DNA from: Podarcis filfolensis
Taxonomy: Eukaryota
Length of the DNA: 64,000 nucleotides
Direction: 5' to 3' (one strand)
Assembly: GCA_964270895.1 (NCBI GenBank)
Contig: OZ185436.1
Below, one piece after another: positions 3,503 through 32,800 of the stretch. Under the pieces are notes generated by a model that ran no database searches, was not told where the DNA came from, and was given only the letters and a program-made list of their open reading frames with translations. The position numbers and the translations under genes were made by a program. Numbering within the stretch: position 1 is the first letter of the stretch; every line of letters begins with the position of its first letter.

Positions 3503-3692
3503 ATGTATGCTGCTGTCTCCCTTCTCCTATTGACCACTTGCCTGCCCTCAGGATGGATGGTGAAGCAGAAGGCCCTGGATGACTACGTCAAGCAGCATGA
3601 CCCTCACTACAGCTACACCCTGAAGAACAAGGAGGACAGGCCAGATGTCACCATCTATACCCTCAACATGACCTCCCTGAAGTGGTTGGATG
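3503..3692 (+). CDS. AprA/PqaA-like exon 1 (signal peptide; MYAAVSLLLL...LNMTSLKWLD)
   Basis: ATG at 3503; donor GTGAGA at 3693; phase 1. Confidence 0.88.
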
Positions 3693-6600
3693 GTGAGAGC
3701 AGAGAATGGCAGTTTTTCGCTTGCCCTTTTCATTTGAGGAGGATGAGAAAGAGCGGGAAGGAAGCCTAACGTGATATGGAGGCTTCTAGATGGGTGTGAT
3801 CTGCTCTGTGGGAAGTAAGGAAACGTGAGGAGGAGGAGCTACAGGCCTAGTCTCCCTGTGGCTGGCTAGAAAAGGGAGCATGGTCACTTCCCCAGCCTTT
3901 GGGGAAAACATAGTTCTTAGGTAGAGCTCAAGACATAGGTCCAAGCAGGAAATAGAATCTCTTTAAAGTGGTTAATTCGCACAAATTATTAAGGTTGGAA
4001 TTAGAAAACTTTGTAAGGTCAAGGTCTGATAAAAGGGTGAAGTTGTCCTGTCTGAGAATGTAATGAAGAAGAAATGATCCACCATCTACAGAACAACTGC
4101 AGGGCAATTGGAAGCTAAGCTTTAATTCATGCAAAGGTTTGTGTTGGGTCATTTGACTTTCTTGGGCCAGCAGCATTCTCCTACCAAATTTCTCCATATC
4201 CCAGACACTTCCAAAATCTGCCCACAAGGAATTGTTCACTTCAGAGCCCAATCCAACATGAAATGTTTTCACATATTGCTGCATCTTGCTTGAGCATGAG
4301 GAACAAGATACATGCCCCAACCTCCAGTCATACTGACCCTTTATCGGGGGATTTTCCTGACTGCTTTTATGATGACTCTTTTTTTACTTAGTGCATGGTT
4401 CTTTTGGTGCAGATTCCCGTGTGAATCAGTACATTGTTCTTACTGTTATCTGCAGGAGTGGCTCAACCATCCCTTTCCATTTCCCTTCCTTCCATGCTCC
4501 ATTTTTTGAGCTACGATTCATGGGGTTGATGGGATTTGGAATCTAACAACATCCCTGCCCAAATTGGTGGGGCTGGTGACCTTCCTTTCGCTTCATATGT
4601 CCTAACCCTGTGTGTGTGTGTGATTTCTCTACTATTAGATAAATATCAGTTATGTTTCTGTGTATCCATTCAGAATCTGAAGTGGATGCAACAGTTTGGT
4701 GGCATGAACTGACCATTGTTGTCCCCCGAAACCCCAAAATGATGAGCTTGTGTTTGCTGATGATTGGGAATGGAAGAAATGATGATGTCCCTCAACCCAT
4801 GGACTTAAGGGTTGATGAAGCCATTATGACAGCAAAATCTGCTGGGTTGTAAGTAGCCGGAAGAATCACTGAGAAATGATTATGACATCAACTCTGCTTT
4901 GTTAACACTGTTAAAGAAATTAGTAGCCCTACTAGAATAGAGAACTGTGAAGCAGATGTTTAATGGTAATCTAATCCAATTCACTGTATTCAAGAAAGTT
5001 TATTTATGCTTATTTCTTGGGTTATCTGCCTCTCAGCTCCCCAGTACATATGTACAAATTATGACCAAGATGTTTCTTGAACTCTTTGTCACACATACTC
5101 AGATAGGGCATTCAAATCATTTAAGAAACTATGACCATGATTTACTGTTAATTAAAATGGCAGCAAAAGAACAGGAAATTAATTTCAGTTTGCTCTTCTC
5201 TGAACTGCTGTAATAGTGTGTCTTGATTTTAGCAAATTTTATGACTAGCCCCAAAGCCACCCAGAGCTGTTGGCTCTGGTTGCTTTGGCATCATTGCCTG
5301 TCAATCATAGAGCGTATTTGCTTGTGTTGATGTTATTTTCAAAGAAGCATGAAGCACTTTCACAGCTATTGCAGAACAGATACTAATGACTAATACTTCG
5401 CTTTGTCTCTGAAGTTGCACAGCTATTTTGAGGCAGATCCCAAACCAGCCAATTACCTACCACGTAAGTGCTCTTCCCACACTCTTTCATACTCTTATGT
5501 GTGTCCACAGAATGAATTGATTGGGTGTAGGGATGTTCACATCTGACAGTTTTGATTTCTCTCTGTTTCTCATCCACCCACCCACTCAATCAAATCTAAA
5601 GTTCAGTTCTCCACAATTACGCACCCGCCTATGGAATTCTTTTAGGGGCTTGTGAAGTTTCATCACTATTTTAGGAAAATTTCTCCTAATAAGCACATTT
5701 TGTGTGTGTAATTTCCCCTAATGTACACATTTTTGCAAGCACTTCCCCTAATATTACGCATTTTAGATGTTATTTTTTCCTAATACATCATTTACTTATT
5801 ATTAGTTTCCTTCCACACACATACCTCTAGGCAATTTACAGTAAACCAGGTAAAAAACAAAAACAACACAATAAGCAGGGGATATATTTTAAACATATGC
5901 ACACACCAGTCCAAAATAGACACCCATAGCTAAAGACCGATTCATCCAACGGGGAAAAGCAGTTGGAACAAAAATGTCTCCAATAGTTTGTAGAAAGTGC
6001 AGATAGTGAGCTGTCCCTGCTCTGTGGAACAGAATTCCTGCTGGGATACAGCACACACCCGCTCTTTGAACCTTCCACAAACAATGGAAGACATTTTTGT
6101 TTAGATACACTTTTCCAGCTGGATGAAATAGTCTCTGCCATAGATGGTTTATGTTGAATTGTTCTCAAATTTATCACCAGGCTGTTCTTATTTTGTATGG
6201 GTTTTTAAAGCAGCTACATGTTTGTAAATTGCCTTGCTACATGCATTGAAGGATATGCAAAAATAAACAAAAATGCAAAAATAAACAAAGAGAATAGCAC
6301 ATGCACATTTGTGTGTGCATTATTTTGCTGGCATACTGCATCGTGAAATCTGCGTGGACAGGTGTGTTTCATTTCACATACTGCTTCAGACAACACAAAT
6401 GAGGGACACTCACGCTAAAACGCAAGCTGGTTTGAATTTCTCCCTTATCCCTCACTGGTATTGTTTTCCAAATAAAACATTTGTATTTCACTTTTGATAT
6501 ATTGATCCTCATTCTGTCAAGCAGAATCACTCAACCTGTAACAGAACTGAACGAACACATTGCTATGCTAGAGTAATAGATCATGGCAGTTCTCATTCCA

Positions 6601-9600
6601 CCTGGTATGAGAACTAGGACAGGCCTATCATGCTGTTCTAGGGGACCAGATGGGAGGCCTCAACCAAAAACTTTGATCTGTTTTGCTTCTAGAAAATCCC
6701 TATGCAAGAATGCAAGAATGGCATTGAAGATTATGCTGTTTTTTGTTCATGGCGGAAGTTCATAATTGACAAGATGGCACAGCCAGATGTGCTGATTCAG
6801 TTCCCAATGGTCAAGGTAACTCTGGCTTCTTCCTTCTTTCTGGATTGGTGGACAGACACTGCCAACATTCAGAAACATGTTCTGCTTGTTCCCATCAATG
6901 CAGTGATGCTAGAAGAGTTTTTTTAAAGGTTTCTTAAGCTTTAAGAAAAAGCTTAATAGCAGCATGGGATCATTCTTTAGAGGAATTGGGGGCGGGGGTT
7001 GGGAGGGAGGGTAGGAGGGAGGAGAGTCCCCCTTGTGCTGCTCAGCTGACTGGGGAACAGCTGAGAGTGGTGAAAAAGGGTGTCGGACTCCAGAATAAAG
7101 TTGATCTTTATTCTAAGGCGCCCCCCCCCATTTTTCCTACTGCTTGGCTGAGCCATGGGAAGGTATACTGTACTGTCAACCATGTAAGATTAGGCACTGG
7201 CCCAGAAGCAGCCTGGGAAGTGCAGGTTGTACAGTTCTGAACAGGAAATAGGAAAAAAGGCACGTTTCATGGAGACTATGCATATAGACTAGAGAATCTA
7301 CATATGCCCAGAAAATGTGCGAAATGAAGTCAAGATACATACATTTTCAACGGCCTGTTTGGGATTATGCATAATGGCCAGATAATGTTCAAAATTTAGC
7401 TGAAGATATGAACATTTTGCAAAGCCTATTAGGGATTATGTATAATTGCCAGTGATATACAAAATTCACTCGATATATGCACATTTCCTTGGCCTTGCTG
7501 GAAATTATGTGTGATGATCACAAATTCTGCACAATTCCCTCTTCATTGAAGGATTGTGTGCATATTCGGCTTGAGACCTGACAAATGAGCACAGTGTTGC
7601 AAAGAACTAAACACAAAATATATCAGAGTGTGAAATTAATTCATTTTGTTTCTAGGAGAACGATTTGTAAAAAATATCAGTTAGCTGATGAGTGCTGATC
7701 CTTACATCGGCACACTGTGTGTACCCTCAGTATTGCCTTTGCAAAATATAGGGTGCCCCTGTTAAAGCTCTGAAGACAAACCTCCTTGTGATGGCACTGT
7801 GACTATGCCATTCTAACAATAAAGTATCCTCAGACTCTTTGCAAGTATGTCCTTTGCGTTCCAGAGGCTGTAATCCTTTTGTCTTGTCTTCAGGCCACTG
7901 TGCGGGCCATGGACACCATAACAGCGTTCTTACAGAAAGAATCTGCTGGAAAGATGAACATTGCCAAGTTCATGTTGACAGGTGGTTCCAAGGTAGGTAT
8001 GAAGGTCTGTGCTGCTTTGCTTTCCATGTATGTAACTCATCAGTTGCATGATCCTCCTTGTTTTCTTCTCGTTCCCAGTGCACCTTCCCAACCTCATTCT
8101 TTTTTTCTCTTTTTGGCAGCGTGGCTGGACTAGCTGGCTTGCGGCAGCTGTGGATGAAAGAGTTGTGTCCTTTGCTCCACTTGTATTTGATCTTTTGAAT
8201 ATCATTAAGGTGAGAATCCAGTTTCTTCACAGTAAAGTAAAGAAGAGTAAAGAACAACAAGACTGTACAAAGGGCAATGCGCTACGTGTGTGTAGTAATT
8301 CTCCATTCTACAGGATTTCAAGTACCGTATTTTTTGCTCTATAAGACTCACTTTTTCCCTCCTAAAAAGTAAGGGGAAATGTGTGTGCGTCTTATGGAGC
8401 GAATGCAGGCTGCGCAGCTATCCCAGAAGCCAGAACAGCAAGAGGGATTGCTGCTTTCACTGCGCAGCGATCCCTCTTGCTGTTCTGGCTTCTGAGATTC
8501 AGAATATTTTTTTTTCCCTCCTCCCAAAACTAGGTGCGTCTTGTGGTCTGGTGCGTCTTAAAGGGCGAAAAATATGGCACTTTGGCACTTGCTGTATGGA
8601 AAGTCTTAATGTGCACAGAGAACTCACTTCTGGCTGCTTTGCTTCAGAGCTGGCATCATCAATACCGAGCGTACTGTGGCTGGACATTTGCATGGCGGCA
8701 CATACATGAACTGAAAATTACTCAGAAGTTGGACACTCCGCGGTTCAAGATATTAACTTCGCATGTTGATCCACTTGGTGAGCGCTTCTTATGTTCTCAG
8801 ATTTCTCTGATAAATGATATGGTAGCAGAAGAAAGGATAGTTTTAGAAATAGAAGGAAAGGGCAATTTTGGTGGCGCTACAATGCACGCAACAAGCATGG
8901 AAGAGCATGGTGTTATGCAGAGGAATAGGGAATGGCTCGATCAAATGAAGTCTTTTCCACTTTGGTGTAGATCCATTATTTTGTCTGGGGTGGGGCAGGG
9001 TGAGTGGAGCAAGTAAGCAGTCAAGCTAGTCACTGATTAGACACTTTTGCACGCTGTCCTTCAACAGCCTGCCTTGAGTAAGTGTTCACTCCCTTGCTGT
9101 CTTCCCCCACTCCAAACTTCCAACTCCTTTTCTTCTTCCTCTCTCATTTCTCCACTCCCCCTTCCTCTGCCTCTCCACATTTCTTCCTCTAGCAGCCAAT
9201 TACCGGCTTTGTCAAGCTACAACAGCCACTTACTTAAGTGGTATACAAATTTTGTTAAATAAAATAAGTTTCTGTTGTGGCATGTCATTAATTTTATATA
9301 ATCTGCAGACCTCATCTTTTGCATGACTGATTCTGGAAATCAAACGAATATGAGAACTGCAATTTCAGCATCTGTGTCCACTGGACAGAATTCTCCCACG
9401 TCCTTACATTCTGCCCCCTGAGTATATTCCACTCTTTAGGGATTTGTGGTTCTTACTCCATTCTACTTATTCTCTATTGCTTCTCTGCAGTCTTGCTACC
9501 CTTTTTATGATGATTTATGATAAAACAAGGTAGTAAAACAACCTGAGAACCATATGTTGGTCATTTCTAAAACAGTTAATTTTTCCATCCCCAGCATATA

Positions 9601-10722
9601 ACGAACGATACATAAACAAGCCCAAGTATCTAATCATAGCAGCAGGAGATGAATTCTTCCCTCTCGATGATTCCCACCATTTCTTCAATGAGCTATCAGG
9701 AGCAAAATATTTCCGGTGAGTTCATGCTGCTGCTCTCATTTTTCCTTTTACTATCAAACAGCAGCCCATGTTCCGCAAAACTACAACAAGCTAACTCATT
9801 CCGAGCCAAGAAAATCTGGATTCTAATCTGCATCAGTTACATGCATTTAAATGATAAAACCTTTTTTTGCTTAATTCTGTAATGTGTTACTGTTGTGCAA
9901 TAAATCTGCATAGTCTAATCAAGGATAATGGCAAGGAGCTGTGCAGAATACCAAAGCTTCACCCTTGATAACAGAAAACTTTAGTAGCTCCTGTGGCTTT
10001 TGAGACTTTACCGGGCACACCCCACACACTCCCAAGCATAGGACAGGATTCAGCTAACAAACACAACCAATGGAAGCCCACACAAGGACTTCCACTGGCA
10101 CAACAAGGTTTTCCCCCATTTCTGCACCCGCTTCCAGTTGGCTGGGGGGTTCAGGAGAACTCCTGGGACACAGGAGAGGAGATAAACAAACTTTCTTTGT
10201 TGGAGGAAGGGCAGAAGTGACCCAGGTTGTTAGGCAGTCAGTGGATGGTGTTATTAACCCACCTTTGTAATTAGAATGATAAACATGCAACCAGTGAACA
10301 AAATGCTAGTTCAGCCATCACTCCAGTTGACACTGCAATGTTTCTGATGAGTGTCTGCCACTTATTATTATTATCCACTGTGTTTCCATATCCCTCTGTC
10401 AATTTGCTTGTCATCTTACTAATTAAAAAGGATTAAAAAAAGAAGAAACCTGCAAAGCAGTTCGGCCCTCTGATGAGTTGAAACTCGATGACATAAAGGA
10501 CACCAACCAATGGGTTTTGCGCAAAGGCAGCTTTTGCTGTGTGGTTCAAATTAATCTATTCTTTCAAATTAATACGTTCAAATTAATCTATACTTTAAAA
10601 TGTTTACAATTGTCTTTACCCTCAGTAATTCCTGGCTTCATTTTTTTGAATCTCTCAAAGAACTCTGAAAGAAAAGCCGCCCAGAGTGGCTGGGGAAACC
10701 CAGCCAGATGGGCAGGGTATTA

Positions 10723-10766
<44 letters not shown>

Positions 10767-10774
10767 GGTTAGTA

Positions 10775-10807
<33 letters not shown>

Positions 10808-13800
10808 GACTTACCCTTGCAAAAGCCATGCTAGTTTTACTTCAATAAGTCTTGCTCTTTTATATGCTAATTCTATTTTTAATAAGGGTTTTCACCTAAT
10901 TTCACCTATTAACTGGCCTATTACTTCCTAGATCCCCTCTTGATTGCATTTTAAAAGTTGGTGTTACTTGGGCCCATTTGCATTCCTCAGACACGGAGAC
11001 AGGTCTTCGGAGCCAGTTAAATATTTTTGTTAGAAGAACAGCAATTTCACATTTGAGTTCTTTAAGAACTTTTTGGTGGGTAAAATCTGGTGATTTTCTG
11101 TTTGTAATTTGTCAGTAGAGCCTAGAACTTGGCTTCAGATCCCTGCTGCAAAATTCACAGAGGGTTTGAATTAGAATACTTCCCCCCCCGCCCCGCCACC
11201 TGTATATTTTTCTATATGTGTATATTCCAAAGAAGAAAAACCCAGAAAGAGTCAAATTTCTGTGATTAGAGGAAATATGTAATTGCTTTGTCTATTGCAA
11301 GGGAGCTATTATTTTAAAAACCTCTCTGTTGCTCTGCAGGGCCACCCCAAACAATGATCACTTGATGACACGGGACCCATCGATTAAAATATCAATTGCA
11401 ATGTCGGTTATAAGCTTTTTTCTTAGCACCATTTTGAATCTGAAAATGCCCCAAATTTCCTGGAAGAGAACCGAGGTGAGGAAAACTCATGTTGCAACAT
11501 AACTAATTCAGTCATGAGACTTGTTTTATTGTTTACTTCAAGCCATGGGTACACATAGCCTTTTAACTGATGAAAATCATAGTTTATCAAGGACACTCTG
11601 TTAAGCTCAAACTCACTAGGAAATTATCAGTATTATTGGAAGCTGGAAGCCTTGGCCAATGATCCAATAAATGACAGGAACATTATGACATTTGGCCATT
11701 TTCTGAGGTCACTTGGATGGTTTTGAGCTTTACTGGTACATATTAGAATATTATGACATTTCCTTCTGGCCTTTTAATGTTACATTCAGATACAGTGAAT
11801 ATTTAAATAGGCTCTATTAGTATATGTATATGAATATGCCCCTAGAGGCAAAACACAAAGAAAGGTTCTTAATTTCAATGAAATTGAAAGGTTCTTAATT
11901 TCAATGAAAGCTGTAGGTTGATTTCACACAGACTGTTTCCTGACACATGTTTCCAGTGGCGTAGCGTGGGTTGTCAGCACCCAGGGCAAGGCAAGTAATT
12001 TGCGCCCCCTAACCGCACCACACACCTGGCACACCCCCCCCCCCACAGTGGGCGGTGACCCGGCGGCTCGGATCAGATTCGCACAGCCAGCACTGCAGTG
12101 AGAGTGAGTGAGCCAGGTAGGGGCAGAGAGCTGCGAGTGAGAGCGCCCCCCCCCCAGATGTTGCGCCTGGTGCGGCTGGCCCCCCCTGCACCCCCCACGC
12201 TACGCCACTGCATGTTTCTATACTAGCCAGCTAATCAGGTGGCTGCTGTTGAAATGAGATCTTTGCGATCTACGTAGGAAGAACCATTGCACAGTGGTAT
12301 TTGCTTTGCATGTTGAAGGTCTTTGGTTTGATCCCTGATGTTTCCACATAGGCCTGGGAGAGAAACCTGCTTGTAATCACCGTAGACAACTGTTGCCAAT
12401 CAGTGTAGACAAAACTGAGGTAGATGGACCCAACGGTCTGACTCCGTATAAGGCAGCTGTTAAGTTGTGGGTGAACATATCAGACGACACAGCGATTCTT
12501 CCAAGCAGCTCTTTATTTGTAAGCTGGAACAGAACTGAGCTGAGGAGCTTAGTCAGCCTGCTTATATAGAGCTCCAGTGCCTTGTTACTGTAACAACTTT
12601 CTAAAACTATCCAATCACTGAACGTCACTTTCGATCCTTCATTTGCATAACTATCTACAGTGTCCCCCTGCTGGCCCAGGGTGAGAACTTCAGTACATAA
12701 CAGCAGCTTCCTATAGAAAACTTTCATGTAGCTGATAGAAGAAATGGATGATAGCTTGAGGAACGCTTGATATTTCTGTCCCATTCTCTCTTTTTCTAGA
12801 CAAAAGCTACAGGTATTATCGAGCTCTACACAGATATGGAGCCTTCAGCAGTTAAATGTTTCTTTTCTAACACTTTAGGCTCTGAAAGGTAGGATTTATT
12901 GTGTATGATTTATTAATACAAATATACAGAGTTGATATAAATATACGTACAAAGAATGGGACAATCTGTTAATCTCAGTTGTCTCTTTCTTAAATTCAGT
13001 TCTCCACATTTCTGCTGCATTTTGCAAATTACTGTTTTTTTAAAAATCCTCTGGAAAAATTGCCAGCATTTTTGTGTGCTTTTCTCTTAATCTCCACATT
13101 TATGTATGCCGTTTTGTCAAATATACATATTTTTGCAAACAATTCCCCCTAGTGCTTTTTTTGTTTCTTATTTTCACTAACCTATGCATTTATATACGCA
13201 CTTCACCCTAGCATTTCTGTGCACATTACTTGGCTTGAGAGCTGCACTTCAAACTTCGTAGACATGTGAATTTTGAAGGATGTCTGTGTTTTGGTTTCCA
13301 CATTATTTTTGAAAGTGTGACAATGGAGGTTCACTTTTAAATCTCTACAAAGAAGCCATTGGGGTGTTCCCTTCCCTAAAGCGTGCAGTATTTTCTCTCT
13401 GGCAAAAAAAAAGAAGAAAGCATTCTGAGTGCTTTTTGTGTCTGTGAACAGCTCCACAAAACATTATAGTTTTTATACTTTTATATGTTTTCAAACCTAC
13501 AAACAAGATTCATAAGGGAACTTTGTGGGTGGATTACTGAATATGCTCTAGAACTTTTGGAGTCAGGTTGATGGTATTGAAGAACCATCAGAATGCCTGA
13601 GTCATCTGAGTAGTAGACAAAGAGTATTTTTAATTGCTTAAACATAACGATCCCTTTTGCTTCAGTAAGTGAACTATTGCCTTGGCAGTGGTAAAGGTAA
13701 AGCTACTCCTGACCGTTAGGTCCAGTCGCGAACGACTCTGGGGTTGCAGCGTTCATCTCGCTCTAGAGTCCGAGGGAGGCGGCGTTTGTCCGCAGACAAC

Positions 13801-16800
13801 TTCTGGGTCATGTGGTCAGCATGACTAATCCGCTTCTGGCGAACCAGAGTAGCGCACGGAAATGCCATTTACCTTCCCGCTGGAGTGGTACCTATTTATC
13901 TACTTGCACTTTTACATGTTTTCAAACTGCTAGGTGGGCAGGAGCTGGGACTGAACAACGGGAGCTCACCCCATCGCGGGGATTCGAACTGCTGACCTTC
14001 TGATCGGCAAGCCCTAGGCTCTGTGGTTTAGACCACAGCGCCACCTTGGCAGTGGTACTTGTCTCCAAAAAGTAGCTTCCTCAGCACTCACTGTGCCTCC
14101 TCCTTCCCTTCTCATTCTCAGGCGAGACTTCAGGCTGTTGGTGGGTCCTGGTCCTTCAGGTGTTTCACAACCCATATCTTGGCTTCCCTGCAAGGTTGAG
14201 AAAGTGGTAAGAGGATTTGGGATTGGGGGTTTCTCTAAGCTTCGTAACACAGCTGAGTGAATCAAACCCCCACCCCTACGCACACAAGCAGTTCTTCAAA
14301 AATAAATTATTTCCTTCAAAGAAGGGTTCTGTTGCCGACACATTGAATTAGCCCATTTATTTGCAAAGTTCTTTTTTAAAAATTACACAGATAGTGAGTG
14401 TACTCAGTTAGGATAGTGGTGTGGTGTGGGTGTGGTGTGGTGTGGTGTGGTGTGTGTGACATGTACCGGCTGGTTACCATTTGTGATGGGCTGCACAGGA
14501 AAGTCCATTGCTGTTGCTTCCACCTTAAAGGAGCAGAAGCTCATATGTAACAATAAGGCCCACTCTGGAACCTGCTGGGTTCCTTCAGAAGAAAGGGGTA
14601 TACATTGAATGAATAAGTAATCCAAGAGTCAAACAACCAAATAAAATGGGATTCTTTTGTTATATAAGTTACCAAAAACATCCATAGGATGGTTTCATTT
14701 CAAAGCGCAGCAGAGTGTATTTCCATGTATTTCCATCTAATGTTGCCCCAGGAGATGTGAGCTAAAGAGCATTATCTTTATGCTGTAGTTCTAAAATGAC
14801 CCATGCTAGAAAGTAAGACTCACTAATATATTGGGACTCATGAGTCTATAGCGGGGTGGTGAACCTCTTTCACAATGAGGGCTGCATTTCCTTCTGGGCA
14901 AGCTTGTGGAGGCTGCATGCCAGTGATGGGCAGTGTCAAAGGCAAAAGTGAACAGAGCAATCAATGTGAATTCCACAATTGTGCAGTAGCCTAGTTTCTT
15001 CACAGACACACTTTTTTGTCTATCCTCCATCCAGGCAAGCAAGAAGTATTATCAGAGTCCAAGGACACATTCCAGCCAGGGGGAAACAGTCTAGGAGGGA
15101 GGAAAGCACAGCTGGTGAGGGTTGTGCTTTGGAAGTGTGGGTGTCCTGGAGATTATCCCAAGGGCCAGATAGAGAGGGCTGGAGGGCTGCCCTTGGCCCC
15201 TGGGCCTGAGGTTCCCCATCTGTGATGTATGGAATGGTTTATGATCACCTGGAAAGAAGTAGGATGTAACCCCAACCCATCCTGCCCCACTTTGAGCACA
15301 GTCGCCATAGCTGTTCCACTCTACCCTGTCCTTGGGAGACTCAAACCAGGAACACGCTTCTCCAGATTCACACTAGTGAACATTTTAGAATTTCATAAGC
15401 TCAGGGTTTACAAGAGCGCCTGTTACCTGTTCATTTCTCAGTGGCTTCTGTCTGATCCCATTGCAGAAAACGGGTGTTTATAAGGCAGAAGAGGAAAAGC
15501 CACAATCAGGATGGAAGGCTTTCTTTATTGAGGTAAATATTCACTCCAGTCTAGTATTTGACTCCCCCACCCCCAGGAGAGAAAACTCTGAGTGCCTTGA
15601 GTACCAGGACTGATGGAGATTCACCCAAATCAGTCTCCCTGGAAATAACAGGCACTTTTAGGAGGGTCATGTATTGGCATTAGCACTGAGATGCTAAGCC
15701 AGAAGAAATCAAGATAGGTTGTTAGACTACGTTTCTCAGATCACACAATTGCTCTGGAGTGTCTACCCTATTCCAGTGTCAAATCTTCATCAACACCTAA
15801 AAATAAAGGCTAGAAGGTTTAAGTTTTCCATAAAACGTGTTTTGGGCAAATTATGGCTTGAATAAAGCACTCCTAAATCAGAGTGGTTGACAGGTAGGAA
15901 CTATGAGCTGGAAATTGCTGTTCCATGTTGCAGTCCAGGCATTAATTCATTGGCTGCTGTAATCACGCCATGATATTTCTTAGGGCTCTGTGAAGCAACC
16001 CAAGCTGCTTCACTTCTGACTGTCCCCTATTCAGTTTGAATTGCTACAGGAAGGAGGTGGTGTTGCACCCCAATTCCAAAGCTGCAGCTTCAGACCTCCC
16101 ATTGACTTGCATTGGGAAAGCAAGATATTCACAAATTTTGGAATAGTTACATAGGTGCATAACACCTGCTGACATAGATGGCCCACCTCTCCAAAAATAG
16201 GATGAACCCTGCCAAATTTGAGACACATAGATCGTGTGACTTTTCTAATAATAATAATAATAATCCAGAACAGTCATAACTTATTTGAAAAAGATTTTGA
16301 AAACCTATCTCAGAAAACACTATGGCCAGGGGACAACACACAATATGTGTATATGCTTGTGTGCATAGATATATGTATATATAATGTTGGATTGGGAAGG
16401 ATGGAAAAGAATAGAAAACAAACACGTAGTTTGATTATGAAGGATCTATGACTCATTGAGAGATGATACAAATGTAAATAAAGTTCAAAACACCATAGCC
16501 ACATTTGGGAGAGGAAGGAAGTAAAACTGCATTAGTGGCTATTATAACTGGAGACTAAAAGTGACAACAAGCTCTATGTGTGTGTAGATAGAGAAGGGTG
16601 AAAAAAGCAAATAGGTAGAAATGTTGGGTTAAGAGACAAGCTGAATCAAAATACCACAGCAAACTCCTTGTGCCATTCATAGTACTAGCCAAAGTGTGAG
16701 GGGAAAGGCACTGGGACAAAGATACTAGGATTGTGGGGATGTAGGATAATATTCTACGTCTGGGTTTGAGGCTACGGGGAGCAAACACCAGTTCTACTAC

Positions 16801-17640
16801 TCCCATGACTCCATCATCGTGTTTCCCTTATTTGAGGACGTTTACATTTTTCCAGTCATTTTGGAGACAGGTTACTTGGCTTAGATCACCTTTGCTTTGT
16901 AACTGAATGTCTCCAGAGCAGGGGGATCTTCTGCTCAGATCGCTTTGGGGGCAGAGCTGAGCCTTGGAGGGACCCTACTTTGATACCACCTCATCTTGGG
17001 ATTTGGATGAAGTGGTTGCACAACCCTAGCTGTTAAAACAATTTTGGGGGATATTGCATCATGTGAACTACTTCCTTCTGTTTAATGAGGGAATATTGGC
17101 TTTGTAACCAATAATCTAAAAGACTCAAGTCAAAAACTGGTAGTACCCAAATTACCAAACACTGGGTGAGTGGCTGGGGAAACCCAGCCAGATGGGCAGG
17201 GAATTAATAATAATAATAATAATAATATTAATTTATTAGCTTTCCTTTCAGTCTAGCTCACTCACTGTGTCCTTCCAAAAACAATAAAGCAACTATGCCT
17301 GAAAGCTCTACTTTCATGTACTAATTGAAATCCAGTGACAGAAAGCTGTTGTGCTGAATAGGCAGGAAGTATTCTTCCATAAGCTACAATATGCTGTAAG
17401 GCACAATTATTTTTTAGCTATATTTTTTAGCTATCCCTGTGCTTTGCACTCCCAATGTAGGCTCCGTTCTATTAGATTTGCAAGGCGAGCTATTGAGCAG
17501 AACTGCAATTTCTTTTCCAGGCCACCTTCCCAGGACCTGGGACCATTGATTTTGTGTTAAGTTCTGAGGTTCACATCATTCCAGACACTTTTCCATGTCC
17601 AGCCTGCCACGGAAAGGAATGCAAGGGGAAGGTGGTATGA
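3503..17640 (+). CDS. Autocrine proliferation repressor A (AprA)-like / PqaA-family (PhoPQ_related) secreted alpha/beta-hydrolase, 13 coding exons, 490 aa
   Basis: Exons 3503-3692, 4674-4848, 5415-5463, 6693-6815, 7894-7992, 8120-8209, 8648-8777, 9595-9715, 11340-11475, 12800-12888, 14122-14206, 15467-15532, 17521-17640. All introns are GT..AG with compatible phases; total 1473 nt = 490 aa + TGA. Family motifs in order: ALDDYV..DP.Y, LNMTS..W, W.HEL, LRQIPNQPI, QFPMVK, GGSKRGWTSW, HH.YRAYCGWTFA, DP..Y.ER, GDEFF, PNNDH, RRDFRL, GW.AFFIE, FPGP, EV.IIPDTFP, C-terminal C..C.G..C. Hydrophobic N-terminus MYAAVSLLLLTTCLPSG. Family assignment is from recalled motifs. Confidence 0.9.
4674..4848 (+). 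CDS. AprA/PqaA-like exon 2 (ESEVDATVWWHELTIVVP...AKSAG)
   Basis: ttcag acceptor; GTAAGT donor at 4849. Confidence 0.9.
5415..5463 (+). CDS. AprA/PqaA-like exon 3 (CTAILRQIPNQPITYH)
   Basis: tctctgaag acceptor; GTAAGT donor; not in ORF track. Confidence 0.88.
6693..6815 (+). CDS. AprA/PqaA-like exon 4 (KIPMQECK...QFPMVK)
   Basis: ttctag acceptor; GTAACT donor. Confidence 0.88.
7894..7992 (+). CDS. AprA/PqaA-like exon 5 (ATVRAMD...LTGGSK; putative nucleophile Ser codon 7987-7989)
   Basis: cttcag acceptor; GTAGGT donor. Confidence 0.9.
8120..8209 (+). CDS. AprA/PqaA-like exon 6 (RGWTSWLAAAVDERV...NIIK)
   Basis: ttggcag acceptor; GTGAGA donor. Confidence 0.9.
8325..8577. mobile_element. Tc1/mariner (pogo/Tigger-like) MITE with internal hairpin
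   Basis: TA|CCGTATTTTTTGCTCTATAAGAC...GTCTTAAAGGGCGAAAAATATGG|CA (degenerate TIRs, TA target site); internal 30-bp inverted repeat. Confidence 0.75.
8648..8777 (+). CDS. AprA/PqaA-like exon 7 (SWHHQYRAYCGWTFA...HVDPL)
   Basis: cttcag acceptor; GTGAGC donor. Confidence 0.9.
9595..9715 (+). CDS. AprA/PqaA-like exon 8 (YNERYINKPK...GDEFF...KYF; putative acid Asp codon 9648-9650)
   Basis: ccccag acceptor; GTGAGT donor. Confidence 0.9.
10675..10806 (+). repeat. LINE (L2-like) 3' end with (ATT)n tail
   Basis: gccgcccagagtggctggggaaacccagccagatgggc followed by about 75 nt of (ATT)n; the same 3' end recurs at 17168-17230 with an (AAT)n tail. Confidence 0.6.
11340..11475 (+). CDS. AprA/PqaA-like exon 9 (ATPNNDH...WKRTE; putative catalytic His codon 11359-11361)
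   Basis: ctgcag acceptor; GTGAGG donor. Confidence 0.9.
11860..11909. repeat. 24-bp perfect tandem duplication (period 26)
   Basis: gaaaggttcttaatttcaatgaaa x2. Confidence 0.85.
11954..12210. mobile_element. Non-autonomous hAT MITE (same family as 1553-1732)
   Basis: Same TIRs; perfect 8-bp TSD CATGTTTC (11946-53, 12211-18). Confidence 0.9.
12285..12460 (+). mobile_element. Squam3-like (Ther1/MIR-derived) SINE, decayed
   Basis: tgctttgcatg...gaaggtc...gtgtagacaa.actgag.tagatggacc...ctgactc.gtataaggcagct; related copies at 22040-22125(+), 53768-53895(+), 44410-44560(-), 57622-57750(-). Confidence 0.65.
12800..12888 (+). CDS. AprA/PqaA-like exon 10 (TKATGIIELYTD...GSER)
   Basis: ttttctag acceptor; GTAGGA donor. 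Confidence 0.85.
13694..14044 (-). mobile_element. Sauria SINE (near full length)
   Basis: Minus strand 5' ggtggcgctgtggtctaaacc...ggttcgaatcccc-like tRNA head (box B cagttcgaatccc) and (ACCTTT)n tail; 13-bp TSD CTTGGCAGTGGTA (13681-93, 14045-57). Confidence 0.9.
14122..14206 (+). CDS. AprA/PqaA-like exon 11 (RDFRLLVG...KVEKV)
   Basis: ttctcag acceptor; GTAAGA donor. Confidence 0.88.
14417..14458. repeat. (GTGTG)n microsatellite
   Basis: gtggtgtggtgtgggtgtggtgtggtgtggtgtggtgtgtgtg. Confidence 0.85.
14850..15222. mobile_element. Old hAT-type non-autonomous element
   Basis: Degenerate termini ggggtggtgaacct / aggttccccatc with gggccagat/ggccc subterminal motifs. Confidence 0.4.
15467..15532 (+). 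CDS. AprA/PqaA-like exon 12 (KTGVYKAEEEKPQSGWKAFFIE)
   Basis: ttgcag acceptor; GTAAAT donor. Confidence 0.88.
17521..17640 (+). CDS. AprA/PqaA-like exon 13, terminal (ATFPGP...PDTFPCPACHGKECKGKVV*)
   Basis: ttttccag acceptor; TGA at 17638-17640. Confidence 0.9.
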   Translation, partial: ATFPGPGTIDFVLSSEVHIIPDTFPCPACHGKECKGKVV

Positions 17641-20330: not shown

Positions 20331-23300
20331 TTTCAAAACAGTTCCTCCTGTTTGCATTATCTGGCTAGCTGCTTTTCCTAGTGCCCCTGTACCTGACTAG
20401 CTCTGCTCCTCCCAATCATCTTTTGCCTAGCAAGATGTTCCCCTCCTCTCTTTCCCCTCAGGTGGAGACCAAACCCATTACAAAAGGGCATTTGCTTCTG
20501 CATTGCTTCAGGCAGTGGCAGGAATGCAAAAGGGAAGGGACAGGGTGATGTTTGCCAGCATGTGCCACCTTTTTCTCCCTCCACTTCAGTCTAGGCCTGA
20601 ACCCATCCTTTAGGTATAGCAGAGCACGTGTCGGCTTCAATTTGACCATGTGCTGGGAGGATGCTTTGGCCACTGAAGAACAACTGGCACATTTCCATCT
20701 GCATAAGGGCTGCCCAGACCATGTGGTTCAGTGCCTTCCATGCTCAGTGACCTTTATAAGTACAGGTATTTGTGCTGATACTCTTTTTCAAGAAGCATGA
20801 ATTACTTTCATATCCTTTGCAGAACTGATACTAATGACTTAAGTACTTTTACTTTACTTTGTCTCTGAAGTTGTGTAGCTCTTTTGAGGCAAATCCCAAA
20901 CTAGTCAATCACCTACCATGTGAATACCCTTGAATCTTTTCCATGTCTGGATCTTGACAAATTCTCTTCTTCTAATACACTCTGATGAGGAAAGTGTTTA
21001 CTTTCTCATGTCAAAATCTAGTGGTAATCTGGAGTTTGTTTGAAAACCATGCTTTATAACAACATCTAAATTTCATAGTCTGTGAAGAAGTGGACATTGC
21101 TTTCACAAAAGTGGTTTAATACTAGAATTAAAATACAGAAGCCAAATCATGAAGTTACCTTAGAGAGAAACTGGGAGTTGCCGTAAGCTGTTCCCCATCT
21201 TCTTACATTTGGAGCCCCAGGCTCTCACCTGTTCCCTGTTCAAACAATCCCAGCATGCACCTTATCAGGATGTCTGTTCCTGCGCTCTCTTAAATGTTGT
21301 GTTGCTTGTGCCTCTCTGGTGACTCATCAAATTGTAATTGTTGGTTCTGAGAGCAATGAGTTCAAAGATGTGTGTAGATCAAAAAAGTGCAGAGCTTTTT
21401 AATATATGTGGAATTTTTAAACATTCATATTCAAAAGCTCTGATTTATACACATCTTTGAGCTAAATTGCTCTCAGCGCTGATGATTACAATTTGTTATT
21501 TGAGAACTCTGTGCTTTGGAAACTCCCTAGGCAGAAAATATGCCCTACTTTTATTACAAAGCTGTGCCTTTTCAAGCTTAATTATTTAAATATCCTTCAA
21601 ATGCATTATTTTCCTTTGCTTTAATGCTATGCACAGAGAACAATGTGCTAGCATATGCCCTCAAGCACTTGCCCTGTAAGACAACATTACTTGTTGCTCA
21701 TGCTTCTCGGTGCAGCCTTTTCCAGCCAGCGCACTTCAGAGCTCCTCCTTCCCAGAAAACCCTGTTCCCCAAACCTCTGTGGTGACATTGCACCCCTGTT
21801 TCTCTGGCAATCTCCCCCTCTCATTTCTGCTAAGTAACACACAGCTGGAGGAGGAACTCCACCTCTTTCCATGTCTGACTGAATATCTGACCTTTCATCA
21901 GGGTATTAATGATTCTGCCTTTGTTCTTTGAAGTCAAGTCAGCTTCCTGGGGGATTGGCTTAACAAACCCCACATATATAAATTTTAAAAATTATGGAGA
22001 ACCTGGCACTGGGAGTGATGTAGATTGGGGGAAAACTGTAGTTCACTGGTAGAGCATCAGCTTTGCATGCAGAAGCTCCTAAATTCAATCACCAGCATCT
22101 CCAGGGAGGTTGGAAATGCATGTGAAATACTTTCAAATCACCATTTAATTTCCAATCTAAGACATTTTCAGGCCTTCCATCAGATATCTAGACAATTTAG
22201 GGCAAAACCTGGTGCAATAAAAGGCAGCAAATATTTTTCTTGTTTACAGACTAGCTCAATCTAATGTCCTTTTGAGGGAGCGGTAATGAAAAATAACAGC
22301 TTCCTAAAAATAATATAGCATTAAGAGGCGCATAACTGCATAAAGTATTCTGCCATTAGGCACCACTACTGAAAAATGCAATCATTGTTGCTTGGCTATC
22401 TTCGTGCTGCCCATTTTTCACTCTTTGTAAGACTAATTGCAATTTCTTTTCCAGGTCACCTTCCTGGGACCCCTGGGCACAATAACTACATATTCACCCC
22501 AGAGGTACAGATCCTCCCAGACACATTTTTCTGTGCAGACTGCAACGGAGAGGAATGCCATAGGAAGCTGGTTTGAAACCAACAAGGGATACTGTGGCTC
22601 CTGCTGCTGAAATCATCCATGATGGAAGAATAAGAGGCACTGAGAAGACCATACACAGGACCAGGTTGGCAGAGAAAGAACCTTGTGTGGAGAGAGTGTA
22701 CAGGTCTCGCTGTTAGACAAACTAAATTGGTTTGGTGGTGGGGATATGATGTCACAAGCTGGAGAAGGATGCTAATCAGGAGCCCTGAAAGAGGACTAGA
22801 TAAGAGTAGAAGTGGAAATGGTAGTGGAGAGCAACTAGGGACTCATTCTACAGTATTTTCAGAAGCAACAGTGATGCCATGTATATTGGCCTAAAGCATG
22901 GCTTAGCTTGGAAGCAAACTCCCAGTGTTCTTAAGGGGGCACTGCAAAAGGAGGGGACAAGTTGTTAAGGCACCCTTAAAGACTTCTCTGGCTAAAATAA
23001 ATTATCTGGGACAGAGGGTTCATTGTTTCCTTTAATCTGCACCTCCCCCTGACCCCAAAGCATCCACCCTTCCTCCTTACTCCCCTAAAAGCTGAAATGG
23101 CAGCATTGGAAGATGCCCTCCCCACACTACAGTGCCAGAAGGCCCAAGCACCACTGCTCTTTCAGTCCTGATGTGGTACTGAGAGCATCCAGAAAGAGCC
23201 CTTCCTCCACTTACTGCTACCACTGCCATAAAAGGAAATGAGGAGAATCCTCTTTCCCGCCCATAGAGGCCAGGCAGGGACCACATATCCAAAGCAAGGG

Positions 23301-26863: not shown

Positions 26864-29800
26864 TAAAAAAACCCACAAAGTGTTAAGGGAAATCCCCAAC
26901 TGATTGGAGATGCCACCCAGCACATAATTATAGGATCAGTCCACCCCCTTAGCTACTGTTTCTGGAAGGAAGCATGATTTAGCTTGAAGAGGCAGCAGGA
27001 AGATCAGGGGACTGTACTTCATTAAGGGCTGCCCTATTTCCCCCTCATAACCCACAACCCACTGGCAAATCTCAACCAGGGAGCTATAGAGAGGCCCCAT
27101 TCTCAGATGCTACATCTCCTCCCCAAAATTCCAGATGTCCACCTAACCACAGATTTGCGCCCCCACCTCCCTCACAGTGAGGAAATCTGGAGGAATGAGA
27201 AATAATTCTTTTCATGGGAGGGGTGTTTACAGCTACTCCACCCTTTGCCCATGTAAGCCTTATAAGAAGCTGCTGCAGGAGAAGGACTGTGAGCTACTTC
27301 ATGGGAGGCATATTTCTAGGGCTAAGCCTGAAACTGAAGCTCCCTTGTTAATTTTGGCTATTGGATGCTACATTTTTAAGTAATCTTTGTTATATTTATA
27401 GCGCTGAAATGTGGGGGTTTGGGGGTTTGTTGTTATGAAATTGTTTTGTAGTATTTGTTTGAAATGCACCCTTTTTTCTTTGTCGTGAGCCACTTTGAGC
27501 ATTTGTGTGTGTGCAGAAACGCAACATGCAAATGAATGAATGAACGAATGAACGAATGAACGAATGAACGAATGACACATTGCTCAAGCAAACTACCCAG
27601 ATCCCTTCACATCATTCCTGCCCCTCCTCACTTGATGCATTTCATCCACTCTTCCTTCTCCTCTGGGGTGGGTGCAGAGATGCGGTACACAGTGTGATTC
27701 CCTTCCACCACACGCCCGTCCGCCTCAGTCTTGCAAGCCTTGATCACCTGGTCTTTGTTGTCAGGGATATACAGCTCAAAGCAGTTCTGCAAGAAGAGAA
27801 GGATAAACAGAATTGATTTGTGGCCAACACCAGCTCAAAATTTCTGCATATTCCAGGGATTTCCCAGACATCCTTCAAGAGCAGGAATTACAGGATTTTC
27901 GACAGCAAGTAACCAGTTCTCTGGTATGACTTCCTGGCAGCAATACAACACTCTGGGAAGGCAACTCTCACCAAGGGCCTACAATTCCACTAGCCGAGCC
28001 AGCATTCCTGGCCCACTGCAGTTATCACCAGAACGACTTGATAAAAATCACTGGCAAGCTGTCTGAGGATCAGACGTAGTTATGAATAAGCCTTTTACCC
28101 ACACATGCAGCCCCATTGCTCCTCAAGAAAGCAAACTAGAAATATCACTGATTAACCACAGTTTCCCCATTTCATCCAAACAAGGAAACTATGGGTGAAG
28201 ACTCTTTGGTTGGATTGATCACAAAGCAGAGGAAGGAGCGAACTAGCTGTGAACAGGAATGGGGCTTTTTCCTATCTTGGCTATTTAAGCTCTGATAGCA
28301 TTATCCAAGTGTAGTCACTAACAGCTCAGATGCTACAGGGTCCTTCAACACCTTGGAGACCTCCAAAAGACAGTGCATATCCTGCACTGCAAAAGCACAG
28401 AAAATAGTACTCTGTGTGCAGGTTTAACATCACCTTGCAAACATCAACATCCACTTAAACACATCAAGCATTTTGCTCTTAGGGCAGAAAAGATGAGTCA
28501 AGTTTCAAAAGCCTGGCTTATCCCTGTGCAGGATTTTTCTGTAGCCAGCTGGGTGTCCTTGCATAGCTTTGCCTCTTCCCCCATGGCAGAATCAGAATCG
28601 ACTCTACAAAAGTAGGCAAGCTTAGTTAATGATTTGCATAATTCAGTTTTTCTTGGTATCATCCTTTTCTTTCTTTTTACATGCACACAGTATCCGCAGC
28701 CTAGGCTCCCCCCAGGTAGGAAGTGGAGAGCACTTCCTACTCTCCAGCACTGGCATTTACTCACAGGCTTCTTGGAATCTTCAACCTCACGGATACTCAG
28801 ATTCTCCAAGGGAATGATGCCTCGTGGCTCCTTGTCCTGCAAGACAACCATTTGTTAATTCAGACACATCCAGGCTGGTTCATTCTGACAAAATATTACA
28901 GGTTCTTCCATCCCAACACTGAACAGTAAGAACACTGCTCTCAGACAGATTCCTCCTTAATGCTCATTTGAAAGGAGTAGCCTACTGCTGCAAACACAAC
29001 CATGGCATCTGACCGACTTAACTGTTTTATTAGGGCATTCGCTTTCATGGGTCCACAACAGAATGCGCTGCACCCAATATATACCCTTGAGATGTCTGAC
29101 TTGGCCACAGTGGCACATGCCTTAGTTGAATCCCGTTTCGATTACTATAACACACTCTACATGGGGCTACCTTTGAAAAGTGTCCAGAAACTTCATCTGA
29201 CTCAAAGAGCTGCAGCCAGATTGTAGACTGGGGCTTGTTATAGAGAGCCCCTTGTTACAACAGCTCTACTGGCTACCAGTCTGTTTCTAGGCACAATTCA
29301 GAGTGCTGGTTATATAACCTATAAAGCACAATACAGTTTAGGTCCTAGCTATCTGAAAGACCACAATCCCTCATACAAACCTGCCCAGAATCTGAGATCT
29401 TTGGGGGAGGCCCTTCTCTCAGTCCTGCCCCCCTCACAGGCACCTTTGGGATGTGGGATAGGACCTTGTGGTGGCTGCTCTCAGACTCTGGAACTCCTTC
29501 CCTAGAGAAGTTTGACTGGCTCCTTCCTTGCTGTCCTTCCGCCAGCAGCTGAAGACTTTCTTGTTACAACAGGCTTTGGGCAACTGACTTGCTTTTAATC
29601 AAAGGGCTGGTGCCATGCTTTTTTCAACATAATTATCTGTACCTTTCTAATAATATATAGTTAGTTTAGATAGTTAAACAAACCTTTATAGTTTTAAAAC
29701 TAACTGCTTTTTAATAATTAAGAGTTTTTCTTCCTATGTTTTTAGCTTATTGTAATGTGTAAGCCACCTTGAATTCTTGTCAGGGGGAAAAGGTGGTATG

Positions 29801-32800
29801 TGTGTCTATATGAAATAATTAAAGCCAAGTCTGCAGTACCTCTACACCAGGCTTCCTCAACCTTGGCCCTACAGATGCTTTTGGCCTACAACTCCCATGA
29901 TCCCTAGCTAGCAGGACCAGTGGTGAGGGATGATGGGAATAGTAGTCTCAAAACATCTGGAAGGCCGAGGTTGAGGAAGCCTGCTCTACACCATTCCCAC
30001 ACCAGTCAGTAAGAGCTCAGCTATGCAGTTGAATCCAGATAACCCATGTCCTGGACTCTTACACGAGCCTAAGACTACATACCATAGTCCATCTTTCAAA
30101 ACTGCACATTAGCAATCCCGTCATGAGATCATGTCCGTGGACACTTACGAGAGCACCCTGTGCCACTCACCGTGGTGTACTCAAAGTAGTAAAGGCAGTT
30201 GTCCGTCAAGATGAACCAGCGCCGTTTCCACGTCTTCACCCGGCCACCTGTGCAGAGAAGAGGCAAGCTTGACAATGCATGCCCAGGCCGAAAGGAGGGT
30301 GCTGGGCACAAGAGCAGCTAAGGCAAAGGCAGAGCTAAGAGCCTACAGGCACAAGTAGGCGGTGTAAGAGAGCGAGTGGCGTCAGCAGTGCAAGCAGAGC
30401 CAGCCGCACACCACAACAGCAGCAGCAGCAGCCAGTGGCTACATGGCGAGCATAGCAGCTGAAGGGGGCAGGCGGAAGGCAGAGGTGGTGGTCATCAAGA
30501 GAAGTGCCCTGCTGCGTATACTATGGAGCAGACATGGATCTGCCGACATGCTGGGGAAGGAAGAGGCATCAGTGTCCTGCTAGTGCTGGAATCTACCTAC
30601 TTAGGCTCTTTATGGACAAAGCTCATAGCTTAGTCAGAGTCTGAGCTCCATGGGATTCTGTTTGCCCTGAGGCTACCCAGGCATCCTGCCTCATAGCCAG
30701 CTCCAACTAATTTAAAAAGAAAGACACACCAACAGACAACCCATGGCTACACAGTCTTTCTCAGCTATGGGTTCTTGTCCCTGAGACTTGCCTGCCCAGG
30801 TACATACAGTTCCAGGCAAGAAGCAGAGCTTAACAACAGCTTCAGGATTAAAAAGGGGTGAGTATTGAAACTACAGGAATCAGCTATTCCCTTTCCTGCC
30901 CCAGTGTGGCTTTTAAGTTGGGCCTCCAGAGCTCCACCCAAAAGGCGGGGTGTGGGGCGGGGCCTGAAATACAAACATGACCTGAAAGTCTTTTCTGTAT
31001 AAGCCCATCTCAGAATAAAAGTTCAATGGAATCCCGCTCTGGTGACTTTTAGTCAGGGTGAGGTGAGAGGGAGGGAGGGGGATTGGCTTAGAACTGGAAC
31101 CCATTGAGAAAGATGCCCCCACCCACCATCCCATCAGTAAACACCGGAGACTCCAGTGGCCCTTCCCAAATTGACACCGAAACTCAGTGTCCAGGATCCA
31201 AATCCAGGGTCTTGGGAAAAGTTTTTGCACAAGCCATCACCAAAATAATGATAATAAAAAGAATCCATACCAGACAGCTCAGATCCCAAGTACAGGGTCA
31301 GAGACCTTGCGACCGCCAGTCAATACAGCGGGGGTCGTTTTGAACACCAAGAGACCCCCAGGACCACCTCCAGCAAAAGCCACCTTGCACCTCACTTGTG
31401 AAAACGACAGAATGCTGTAGCTGCAGGCCCTCCTCGCTTGGCCTCCCCAGTCAGAGGCTGCAAACAACAGCACGTCCAAGAGAGGTGGGGAATACAGGAC
31501 AGGGAGGCAAGATGGAAAGATCTCAGTGGTGGAGAGGGCAACAACTTTGGGTATTTTCTGTCAGCATTGGCTGCTCTCTCAAGCCCATGGTAGTGGAGAT
31601 GAGTCAACAAGATTTAAAAGGTGCAGAACACTAGAGACCCCTCCTAAGGAGGCCCTGACAGCCACAGACCAGCACATACAACAATGAGACCTCATTCAGC
31701 AACACAAGAAGGGAAAGAAAAGGGGGAAAAAAGACAAAACAAGCCAACTGCTCCAGATAGTGCCTGCCACAGTCCCCAGGGAACACAGAAAACCCCACCT
31801 GTTGGGAGCCCCTGGCATCATGGGGTGGCCCACTGCACCACCACTGCCAACCTTCTCAGAAGAGCCACTGCAGGGATCCTCACTCTCTGGTGGTGGGGCA
31901 CACGCCTTTTACGAGGAATGCCAGGAATCTTAAGGCCCTTCTCAGCCCCAAACACTGGAGAACTGCTGCCGGTCAAGAGTAGACCAGGGTGAGGAAACAG
32001 AGGCCCATGAGATTGGCCTCATGGGACAAGTTTGACAGGTGGACCGGGCTACTGATCCACCCATCACACGATGTCACATGGCAGACAGGCATAGCTTTGC
32101 AAGCCTTCATGTCACTCCCCTTCAAACCCTATGTCGGGGGTTTACAATAAGAAGATGGGGTTTCAGAGGCAAGTGCTTTAACACAGTCTTAAGGCTGAAA
32201 AGTGCAATTGGAAGCAGCTTCCACCCCCACCCCCCCTTGAAAGGAGGATCCACTCACTAGAAAGAAAGGTGTGTTTTGCAAGGAAAGCCAGAGGAGGGGG
32301 ACTTCACCAGCACTCTGCCTTTGCTTGCAAAACACAACTTTCTGCTTGCCTTGACTATACACACCTGTTCCCAGTAGAAGGATTTAGACTCCACTCTTCA
32401 GCTGACCAGGATTTGTGGGGAAAGGCCTTGCGGGCCGGGATTAGCCCATGTGCTGGAGATTCCCCACCTTTAGAGTAAACAATACTGGGCTATATGGACC
32501 AATGGTTTGACCTGGTGTTAGGAAGGGTTGCTACCGTCCTATCGGAAGAGTACACAGTGAAACATCTCTAGGGAGCACCAGACAAAAGATGCTTTTTAGT
32601 GTGTGCAAGTTCCAAACAGGTTGTGTTAAGGGTCTGAGGCAAAAACCCAAGTTGGAATTTCACTCACAAAGTTGTTTTCATGCTAGAACAGCTTCTGAGG
32701 TACAACAGCCTTGTGAACAAAGCGGGGGGCAGGCGGTGTCATTACCCCACACACCCTGTTAAGGAGCCCCCAAGCGAAGCTGCTAATAACCAGCTAGAAT

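Follow-up and report, generated by a model that had tools for sequence, protein, structure and literature searches.

The window analysed here is a stretch of 64,000 nucleotides from the genome of the lizard Podarcis filfolensis (assembly GCA_964270895.1, contig OZ185436.1), and positions 3503-17640 of its plus strand carry a gene of the AprA/PqaA family. Splicing of this interval joins 13 exons into a coding sequence of 1473 nt, with 490 codons followed by TGA and zero internal stops, and each of the 12 introns in the window sequence has GT...AG termini. The gene is intact and under purifying selection, its product has an alpha/beta-hydrolase fold and a conserved Ser-Asp-His triad, and the evidence favours a functional, vertically inherited lizard gene whose 490-aa product is probably a catalytically active serine hydrolase that enters the secretory pathway, with catalysis and secretion predicted from the protein sequence and from a structural model.

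Gene structure and family membership

Exon pieces were first located by a stop-to-stop reading of the plus strand and a search for cited motifs. The exon layout along the window was then obtained by tblastn with a 487-aa lizard homologue, itself found with exon 2 as the query in a search of 1.84 billion representative proteins, and the exact boundaries were taken from the flanking sequence. The exons are as follows.

Exon 1: 3503..3692, plus strand; residues 1-64, with the start codon, the hydrophobic leader (residues ~1-17) and the N55-M-T sequon
Exon 2: 4674..4848, plus strand; residues 64-122
Exon 3: 5415..5463, plus strand; residues 122-138, 49 nt, with the IPNQP motif
Exon 4: 6693..6815, plus strand; residues 139-179
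Exon 5: 7894..7992, plus strand; residues 180-212, with G-G-S211-K at its end (nucleophile codon 7987-7989)
Exon 6: 8120..8209, plus strand; residues 213-242, with R-G-W at its start
Exon 7: 8648..8777, plus strand; residues 243-286
Exon 8: 9595..9715, plus strand; residues 286-326, with AGD304EFF (Asp codon 9648-9650)
Exon 9: 11340..11475, plus strand; residues 326-371, with PNNDH333 (His codon 11359-11361)
Exon 10: 12800..12888, plus strand; residues 372-401, where the C-terminal beta-sandwich begins
Exon 11: 14122..14206, plus strand; residues 401-429, with the conserved RDFR motif
Exon 12: 15467..15532, plus strand; residues 430-451
Exon 13: 17521..17640, plus strand; residues 452-490 and TGA, with C477-x2-C480-x4-C485

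An earlier note on this DNA had proposed 13 GT-AG exons that splice into a stop-free 490-aa open reading frame (ORF), several of them invisible to an ORF track, and splicing bears out both points, with exons of 49-90 nt falling below ordinary ORF-list thresholds. The residues that it had named as a catalytic triad, Ser211 in GGSKRGW, Asp304 in AGDEFF and His333 in PNNDH, stand at those positions, as do the N-M-T sequon at N55 and the C-terminal C-x2-C-x4-C (C477/C480/C485). The hydrophobic N-terminal leader is likewise present, with a 9-residue Kyte-Doolittle mean of 2.1-2.4 across residues 1-15. Intron 5 interrupts the nucleophile motif (GGSK/RGW), and the 49-nt length of exon 3 is common to eel, amphioxus and Rhineura. 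Introns 8 (~10664-10830) and 12 (~17144-17236) contain copies of the same short interspersed element on the plus strand, both of which translate to ...GETQPDGQGI... and are followed by a trinucleotide microsatellite.

Membership in PF10142 (PhoPQ_related) was assessed by a Pfam scan in which 5 of 7 exon translations matched at successive profile positions (E 1.7e-9 to 5e-3). The matching segments are exon 1 (profile positions 1-38, E 1.8e-5), exon 2 (positions 41-91, E 6.9e-6), exon 5 (positions 155-181, E 0.005), exon 6 (positions 181-209, E 1.7e-9) and exon 8 (positions 256-294, E 3.4e-8); four of the five score above the cut-off of 20.3 bits, and exon 5 alone, at 16.0 bits, lies under it. 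Near-identical orthologues served as proxies for the spliced window protein in full-length family, search and folding analyses. Those 97.8% and 94.5% identical to it match PF10142 at E 2.6e-94 and 4.1e-94 over positions 1-367 of 367, and PF10142 is the sole Pfam match of the orthologues at E up to 0.01. The locus is thus a member of PF10142, the AprA/PqaA family, as the earlier note had claimed and proposed to check with this profile. A survey of alpha/beta hydrolases from 2024 equates PF10142 with MEROPS peptidase family S82 and describes its members as barely characterised (PMC11878206).

Identity to the window protein is 97.8% over 414 residues for Podarcis lilfordi, 97.5% for P. muralis and P. 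raffonei, 97.0% for Lacerta agilis, 94.5% across all 490 residues for Zootoca vivipara, and 73% across all 490 residues for Rhineura floridana; the exon 2 translation is 52% identical to a Zootoca paralogue. Because five exons match PF10142 in profile order and lacertid proteins are 94.5-97.8% identical, the gene model is not a product of chance. Salmonella PqaA and other bacterial PhoPQ-activated pathogenicity-related proteins share the Pfam family and the catalytic motifs with the lizard protein, and bacterial and metagenomic members are 29-37% identical to it. A search of the ESM Atlas with exon 2 gave nothing beyond fragmentary bacterial PF10142 clusters. Animal orthologues, including those of many squamates, are labelled by NCBI as "autocrine proliferation repressor protein A-like". 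The suggestion that this is an uncharacterised vertebrate enzyme therefore stands in one respect, in that a full-text literature search with the NCBI and Pfam names found no paper on a vertebrate member, and falls short in another, since the orthologues have already been named automatically by NCBI and the family is already S82 in MEROPS.

Fold, catalytic triad and secretory features

The fold was predicted with AlphaFold2 for residues 1-490 of the Zootoca orthologue from a 72-sequence alignment (49 eukaryotic and 23 bacterial rows), with a mean predicted local distance difference test score (pLDDT) of 92.6 and a predicted template modelling score (pTM) of 0.92. In this model an alpha/beta-hydrolase domain (~24-360) is followed by a beta-sandwich (~365-471) and a short tail with a predicted disulfide. 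Ser211 lies between a strand (204-210) and a helix (212-223), Asp304 follows the strand 296-301, and His333 follows the strand 323-328; the modelled triad is thus complete at canonical positions of the alpha/beta-hydrolase fold, the fold that had been claimed for this protein and that the structural matches of the model also support. Of the 72 aligned homologues, all have the Asp, 71 the Ser and 67 the His, with gecko copies accounting for the five that lack His, and the family motifs G-x-S-K-R-G-W, G-D-E-F and P-N-x-x-H are all found in the window protein. Residues 340-358, although hydrophobic, were rejected as a transmembrane segment, as they form a confidently modelled core helix.

Sequence searches found no solved structure of the family, the best single-sequence match having E 0.6, and a profile search of solved structures recovered just the Asp-His segment of unrelated esterases (E 0.007). 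In that region the Asp and His motifs of the PF10142 profile align with those of solved cinnamoyl and chlorogenic acid esterases. The C-terminal 130 residues folded alone also form a beta-sandwich (pLDDT 89.8), which had no significant match in the PDB (best E 0.006, template modelling (TM) score below 0.5). The solved structures closest to the catalytic domain are CE7 esterases (acetyl xylan esterase / cephalosporin C deacetylase; 1l7a, 1ods, TM0077), which match at a Foldseek E of 1e-11 and VIA Z of 21 to 22.9 over ~283 residues (model 19-359 versus chain 22-318). CE7 esterases are serine hydrolases with a Ser-Asp-His triad, as the lizard protein appears to be from its sequence. The likeness is structural only: the lizard orthologues have no Pfam AXE1 match, and identity is 12-16%; the nucleophile motif GGSKRGW is not of CE7 type, and the lizard protein has a leader and a C-terminal beta-sandwich in addition to the CE7-like domain. 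Peptidases of family S9 have a similar catalytic-domain fold and rank below the CE7 esterases, with Z of 17.6 for DPPIV (1orv) and up to 19.4 for acylaminoacyl peptidase. The S9 alignment covers catalytic domains only (model 46-360 versus DPPIV 507-766; 9-13% identity), and the N-terminal beta-propeller of the DPPIV type is absent from the lizard model. DPPIV is a functional analogue proposed from predicted structure and not a member of the family.

A possible mode of action can be outlined from these features. The hydrophobic leader would bring the protein into the secretory pathway, and the mature form would consist of the alpha/beta-hydrolase domain, the beta-sandwich and a short disulfide-bearing tail. 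Ser211 would occupy a strand-Ser-helix nucleophile elbow, with Asp304 and His333 placed after the next two core strands, and the three residues together would make up a classical charge-relay triad, able to cleave an ester or peptide bond of a substrate in the lumen or outside the cell. One candidate substrate is a small acyl ester, as for the structurally closest CE7 esterases, and another is an N-terminal dipeptide, which would match the DPPIV-like activity that AprA is reported to have.

Several features of the sequence bear on secretion. Of the 24 eukaryotic homologues with inspected N-termini, most have a similar hydrophobic leader. The sequon Asn is present in 46 of 49 eukaryotic rows and is replaced by Asp or Glu in 19 of 23 bacterial rows, while the adjacent Met-Thr is conserved family-wide; this is the pattern expected if secreted eukaryotic members had gained a glycosylation site here. 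In Dictyostelium, secreted multilamellar bodies have another family member as a major protein (PMC4920372). Ten cysteines are found in the mature protein, of which C480 and C485 occur in 49/49 eukaryotic rows, with the pair found in just 2 of 23 bacterial rows. C90, C252 and C477 are present in all 15 squamate rows and in no other rows, and C123, C145, C156, C391 and C424 in 9 of 15. These eight squamate-type cysteines are absent from fish, protist and bacterial rows, and among invertebrates C391 alone is found (3/25 rows), which suggests that disulfides were added on the squamate line.

On its own the leader argues only for entry into the endoplasmic reticulum (ER), and the protein could therefore be a luminal hydrolase that resides in lysosomes or secretory organelles instead of leaving the cell in soluble form. 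Two observations in Dictyostelium lend some weight to this alternative: multilamellar bodies, which derive from lysosomes, have the family member Q86JB6 among their major proteins (PMC4920372), and Cln5 pull-downs recover AprA along with lysosomal enzymes (PMC6406579). Yet AprA itself is secreted (PMC5821085). The window protein ends in KGKVV and has no C-terminal ER-retention motif, its sole hydrophobic stretch beyond the leader is the modelled core helix, so that no transmembrane segment is supported, and the extra squamate cysteines fit an extracellular protein equally well. Retention within the lumen is, on this evidence, rather unlikely.

Comparison with AprA and the gecko copies

Dictyostelium discoideum AprA (Q5XM24), the type member of S82/PF10142, belongs to the same Pfam family as the lizard protein. 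The two are alike in having an N-terminal leader and an alpha/beta hydrolase followed by a C-terminal beta domain, and the AprA and Zootoca models superpose with TM scores of 0.88/0.87 over 489 aligned residues at 32% identity, AprA being the only whole-chain structural match among reviewed proteins. The Ser-Asp-His triad and the C-terminal C-x4-C pair of the lizard protein are also present in an aligned homologue from Dictyostelium firmibasis. The lizard protein differs from AprA in its eight extra, almost squamate-only cysteines, and the AprA receptor pathway (GrlH) and the partner CfaD are known from Dictyostelium only. AprA acts as a secreted chalone and chemorepellent by way of GrlH, a G-protein-coupled receptor (PMC5821085, PMC8326840), and a DPPIV-like protease activity is also reported for it (PMC8326840, citing Herlihy 2013 and 2017; PMC5821085). 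DPPIV is a chemorepellent of neutrophils (PMC8326840).

The catalytic residues have followed a different course in geckos. None of the 20 sampled gecko copies (Eublepharis, Heteronotia, Sphaerodactylus, Euleptes) retains the K-R that follows the nucleophile, and about half lack the Ser too. Those that can be aligned over the His region have Tyr, Gln, Ser, Phe or Arg in place of the catalytic His. Snakes, iguanians, lacertoids, lungfish and eels retain all three motifs, and a partial skink copy retains the two that it covers. To judge by these substitutions, geckos appear to have expanded the family as pseudoenzymes, and the gecko-wide loss of the catalytic His would be a clear case of a family drifting in that direction.

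These comparisons bear on whether the lizard protein is mainly an extracellular signal, one that represses proliferation or repels cells through a receptor as AprA does, with catalysis secondary or dispensable. The whole-chain fold match to AprA (TM 0.88) and the action of AprA as a secreted chalone and chemorepellent through GrlH (PMC5821085, PMC8326840) point that way, as do the gecko copies, which lack the catalytic His and have nevertheless been kept in multiple copies, so that a non-catalytic function exists in squamates. However, the SKRGW, Asp and His motifs are conserved in the lacertid gene and in its relatives from snakes, iguanians, lungfish and eels, from which it can be argued that catalysis matters in the lacertid lineage. 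In addition, human neutrophils are not repelled by AprA (PMC8326840), and identity to AprA is a mere 32%. A role mainly in signalling is accordingly judged to be distinctly unlikely. It is conceivable, if improbable, that squamates, lungfish and eel-like fishes keep a true animal orthologue of AprA, that the lizard protein is a secreted protease-type signal for leukocyte movement or tissue growth, and that the multiple, catalytically dead gecko copies are pure ligands or decoys that descend from it. Were this so, a protein of that kind would have been retained in those lineages while apparently missing in mammals.

Integrity, origin and surroundings of the locus

Gapless alignments at 94-100% identity to the window cover all 13 exons of the orthologues in P. 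raffonei, P. muralis, L. agilis and Zootoca, with AG/GT at every junction and zero internal stops, and the Rhineura gene has the same exon sizes as the window gene. Pairwise ratios of nonsynonymous to synonymous substitution rates (dN/dS) are 0.17-0.36 among the five lacertids. Against Rhineura, at a synonymous rate (dS) of ~0.35, the ratio is 0.41-0.45 and significantly <1 (p 6e-7 to 7e-9), and binomial p values for the whole-gene tests overall range from 7e-4 down to 7e-9. Exons 9-13 alone give 0.28-0.51 (p 0.001-0.03); the constraint on these exons matters because NCBI models of several species stop short of them. In P. raffonei, P. muralis and L. agilis the genome carries an uninterrupted ORF despite those truncated models, full-length NCBI models exist for Zootoca and Rhineura, and the comparison of genomic sequences indicates that the full ORF is maintained at the DNA level.

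A number of points weigh against a working, catalytically active product. The NCBI models of P. muralis and P. raffonei are 326 aa long and end by read-through into intron 8, a second and newer P. muralis model of 303 aa skips from exon 7 to exon 10 with loss of the frame, and the L. agilis model of 292 aa ends after exon 7. His333 is absent from all of these, as is Asp304 from the 292- and 303-aa models, and an alternative first exon without the leader is also among the defects of this set. The tissues sampled may therefore contain little full-length mRNA. The dN/dS values of 0.2-0.45 reflect only moderate constraint, the structural model is that of the Zootoca orthologue (94.5% identical) and not of the window protein, and the signal-peptide cleavage site is not clean, with Pro at -3 if the cut follows Gly17. 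Finally, as the gecko copies are catalytically dead, the family can persist without catalysis. Intronic polyadenylation was considered as the cause of the 326-aa Podarcis models and was rejected, since an AATAAA lies 184 nt into intron 8 in the window species alone and the other four lacertids have AATAAT at that site.

Taken at face value, the truncated models would describe a decaying locus whose transcripts are mostly truncated or mis-spliced and lack His333, so that the full-length ORF is not the working product. Two successive annotations of P. muralis, together with those of P. raffonei and L. agilis, give truncated models only, and the family undergoes birth-and-death turnover, with a decayed copy downstream and a frameshifted last-exon fragment upstream. 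The stop codon is also lost, among the lacertids compared, in Zootoca alone, where a Leu codon replaces the terminal TGA and the NCBI model extends 84 residues into downstream sequence. Decay is difficult to reconcile with exons 9-13 that are gapless, stop-free and flanked by canonical splice sites in five lacertids and Rhineura, with a dN/dS significantly <1 for these same exons, or with the full-length models of Zootoca and Rhineura, and we consider it very improbable.

The taxonomic distribution of the family was taken from the best 120 matches listed per protein search. The vertebrate matches so listed are from squamates, seven elopomorph fishes (eels, tarpon, bonefish) and the lungfish Protopterus, and the others are from tunicates, amphioxus, hemichordates, echinoderms, molluscs, rotifers, a sponge, Dictyostelium and many bacteria. 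Mammals, birds, turtles, crocodilians, amphibians and other teleosts are missing from these matches, even though more distant invertebrate proteins do appear among them; the lack of a mammalian protein there agrees with the earlier note, to which no human gene of the family was known. In a maximum-likelihood tree made by a quick search, with branch support by the Shimodaira-Hasegawa-like approximate likelihood ratio test (SH-aLRT) alone, the vertebrate sequences form one clade inside animals (SH-aLRT 98) and the squamates one clade (SH-aLRT 100), with bacterial rows as the outgroup to the eukaryotic clade. The window gene clusters with those of Zootoca and Rhineura and is sister to three lacertid-specific paralogue lines. 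By exact spliced mapping, all 12 lizard introns match those of eel and amphioxus in position and phase, and the amphioxus gene has three introns beyond the lizard set. The 12 common introns and the single vertebrate clade identify an old chordate gene that has been vertically inherited and lost in many vertebrate lines, and not one acquired by transfer. Bacterial contamination or recent horizontal transfer of a PqaA-type gene, which a mostly bacterial family with a patchy vertebrate distribution might bring to mind, is rejected as practically nil in probability by those shared spliceosomal introns, by the single vertebrate clade and by flanks that are collinear with four other lacertid genomes.

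Current knowledge is not overturned by this gene, which has already been named automatically in public annotation. Its value lies in providing a true vertebrate counterpart for AprA biology and a view of family turnover within squamates: some vertebrates have genuine AprA-family genes that are intact and subject to selection and that stand in tandem arrays with turnover. They offer a direct vertebrate system for studying what the enzymes of S82, a family called barely characterised (PMC11878206), do. The patchy retention in squamates, lungfish and elopomorph fishes, as far as the listed matches go, is an ordinary but clear example of differential gene loss.

Remnants of related genes lie on both sides of the locus. 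Directly downstream is a decayed paralogue, represented on the plus strand by an exon-3-like piece with an in-frame stop (20869-20934, IPN*SITYH) and by an exon-13-like piece in which the cysteine motif is still there (22433-22573). Upstream, at 1915-1996 on the plus strand, is a fragment resembling the last exon of another paralogue, which is divided between two reading frames and keeps only one of the three cysteines. Collinearity with other lacertids extends over the upstream 3.5 kb; in those genomes the neighbouring PF10142 gene annotated upstream lies on the opposite strand.

Further downstream, the interval ~28500-41500 on the minus strand contains exons of a cytohesin (Sec7-PH) gene. 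A Pfam scan of the neighbouring long ORFs gave no match, and a PDB sequence search then identified a cytohesin exon, the ORF at 37812-38207 (minus strand) matching cytohesin-3 structures at E 3e-21. More cytohesin-like pieces lie at 28498-28851 and 41049-41474, also on the minus strand. Positions 57989-58121 are a run of 133 N, which marks an assembly gap or a masked stretch.

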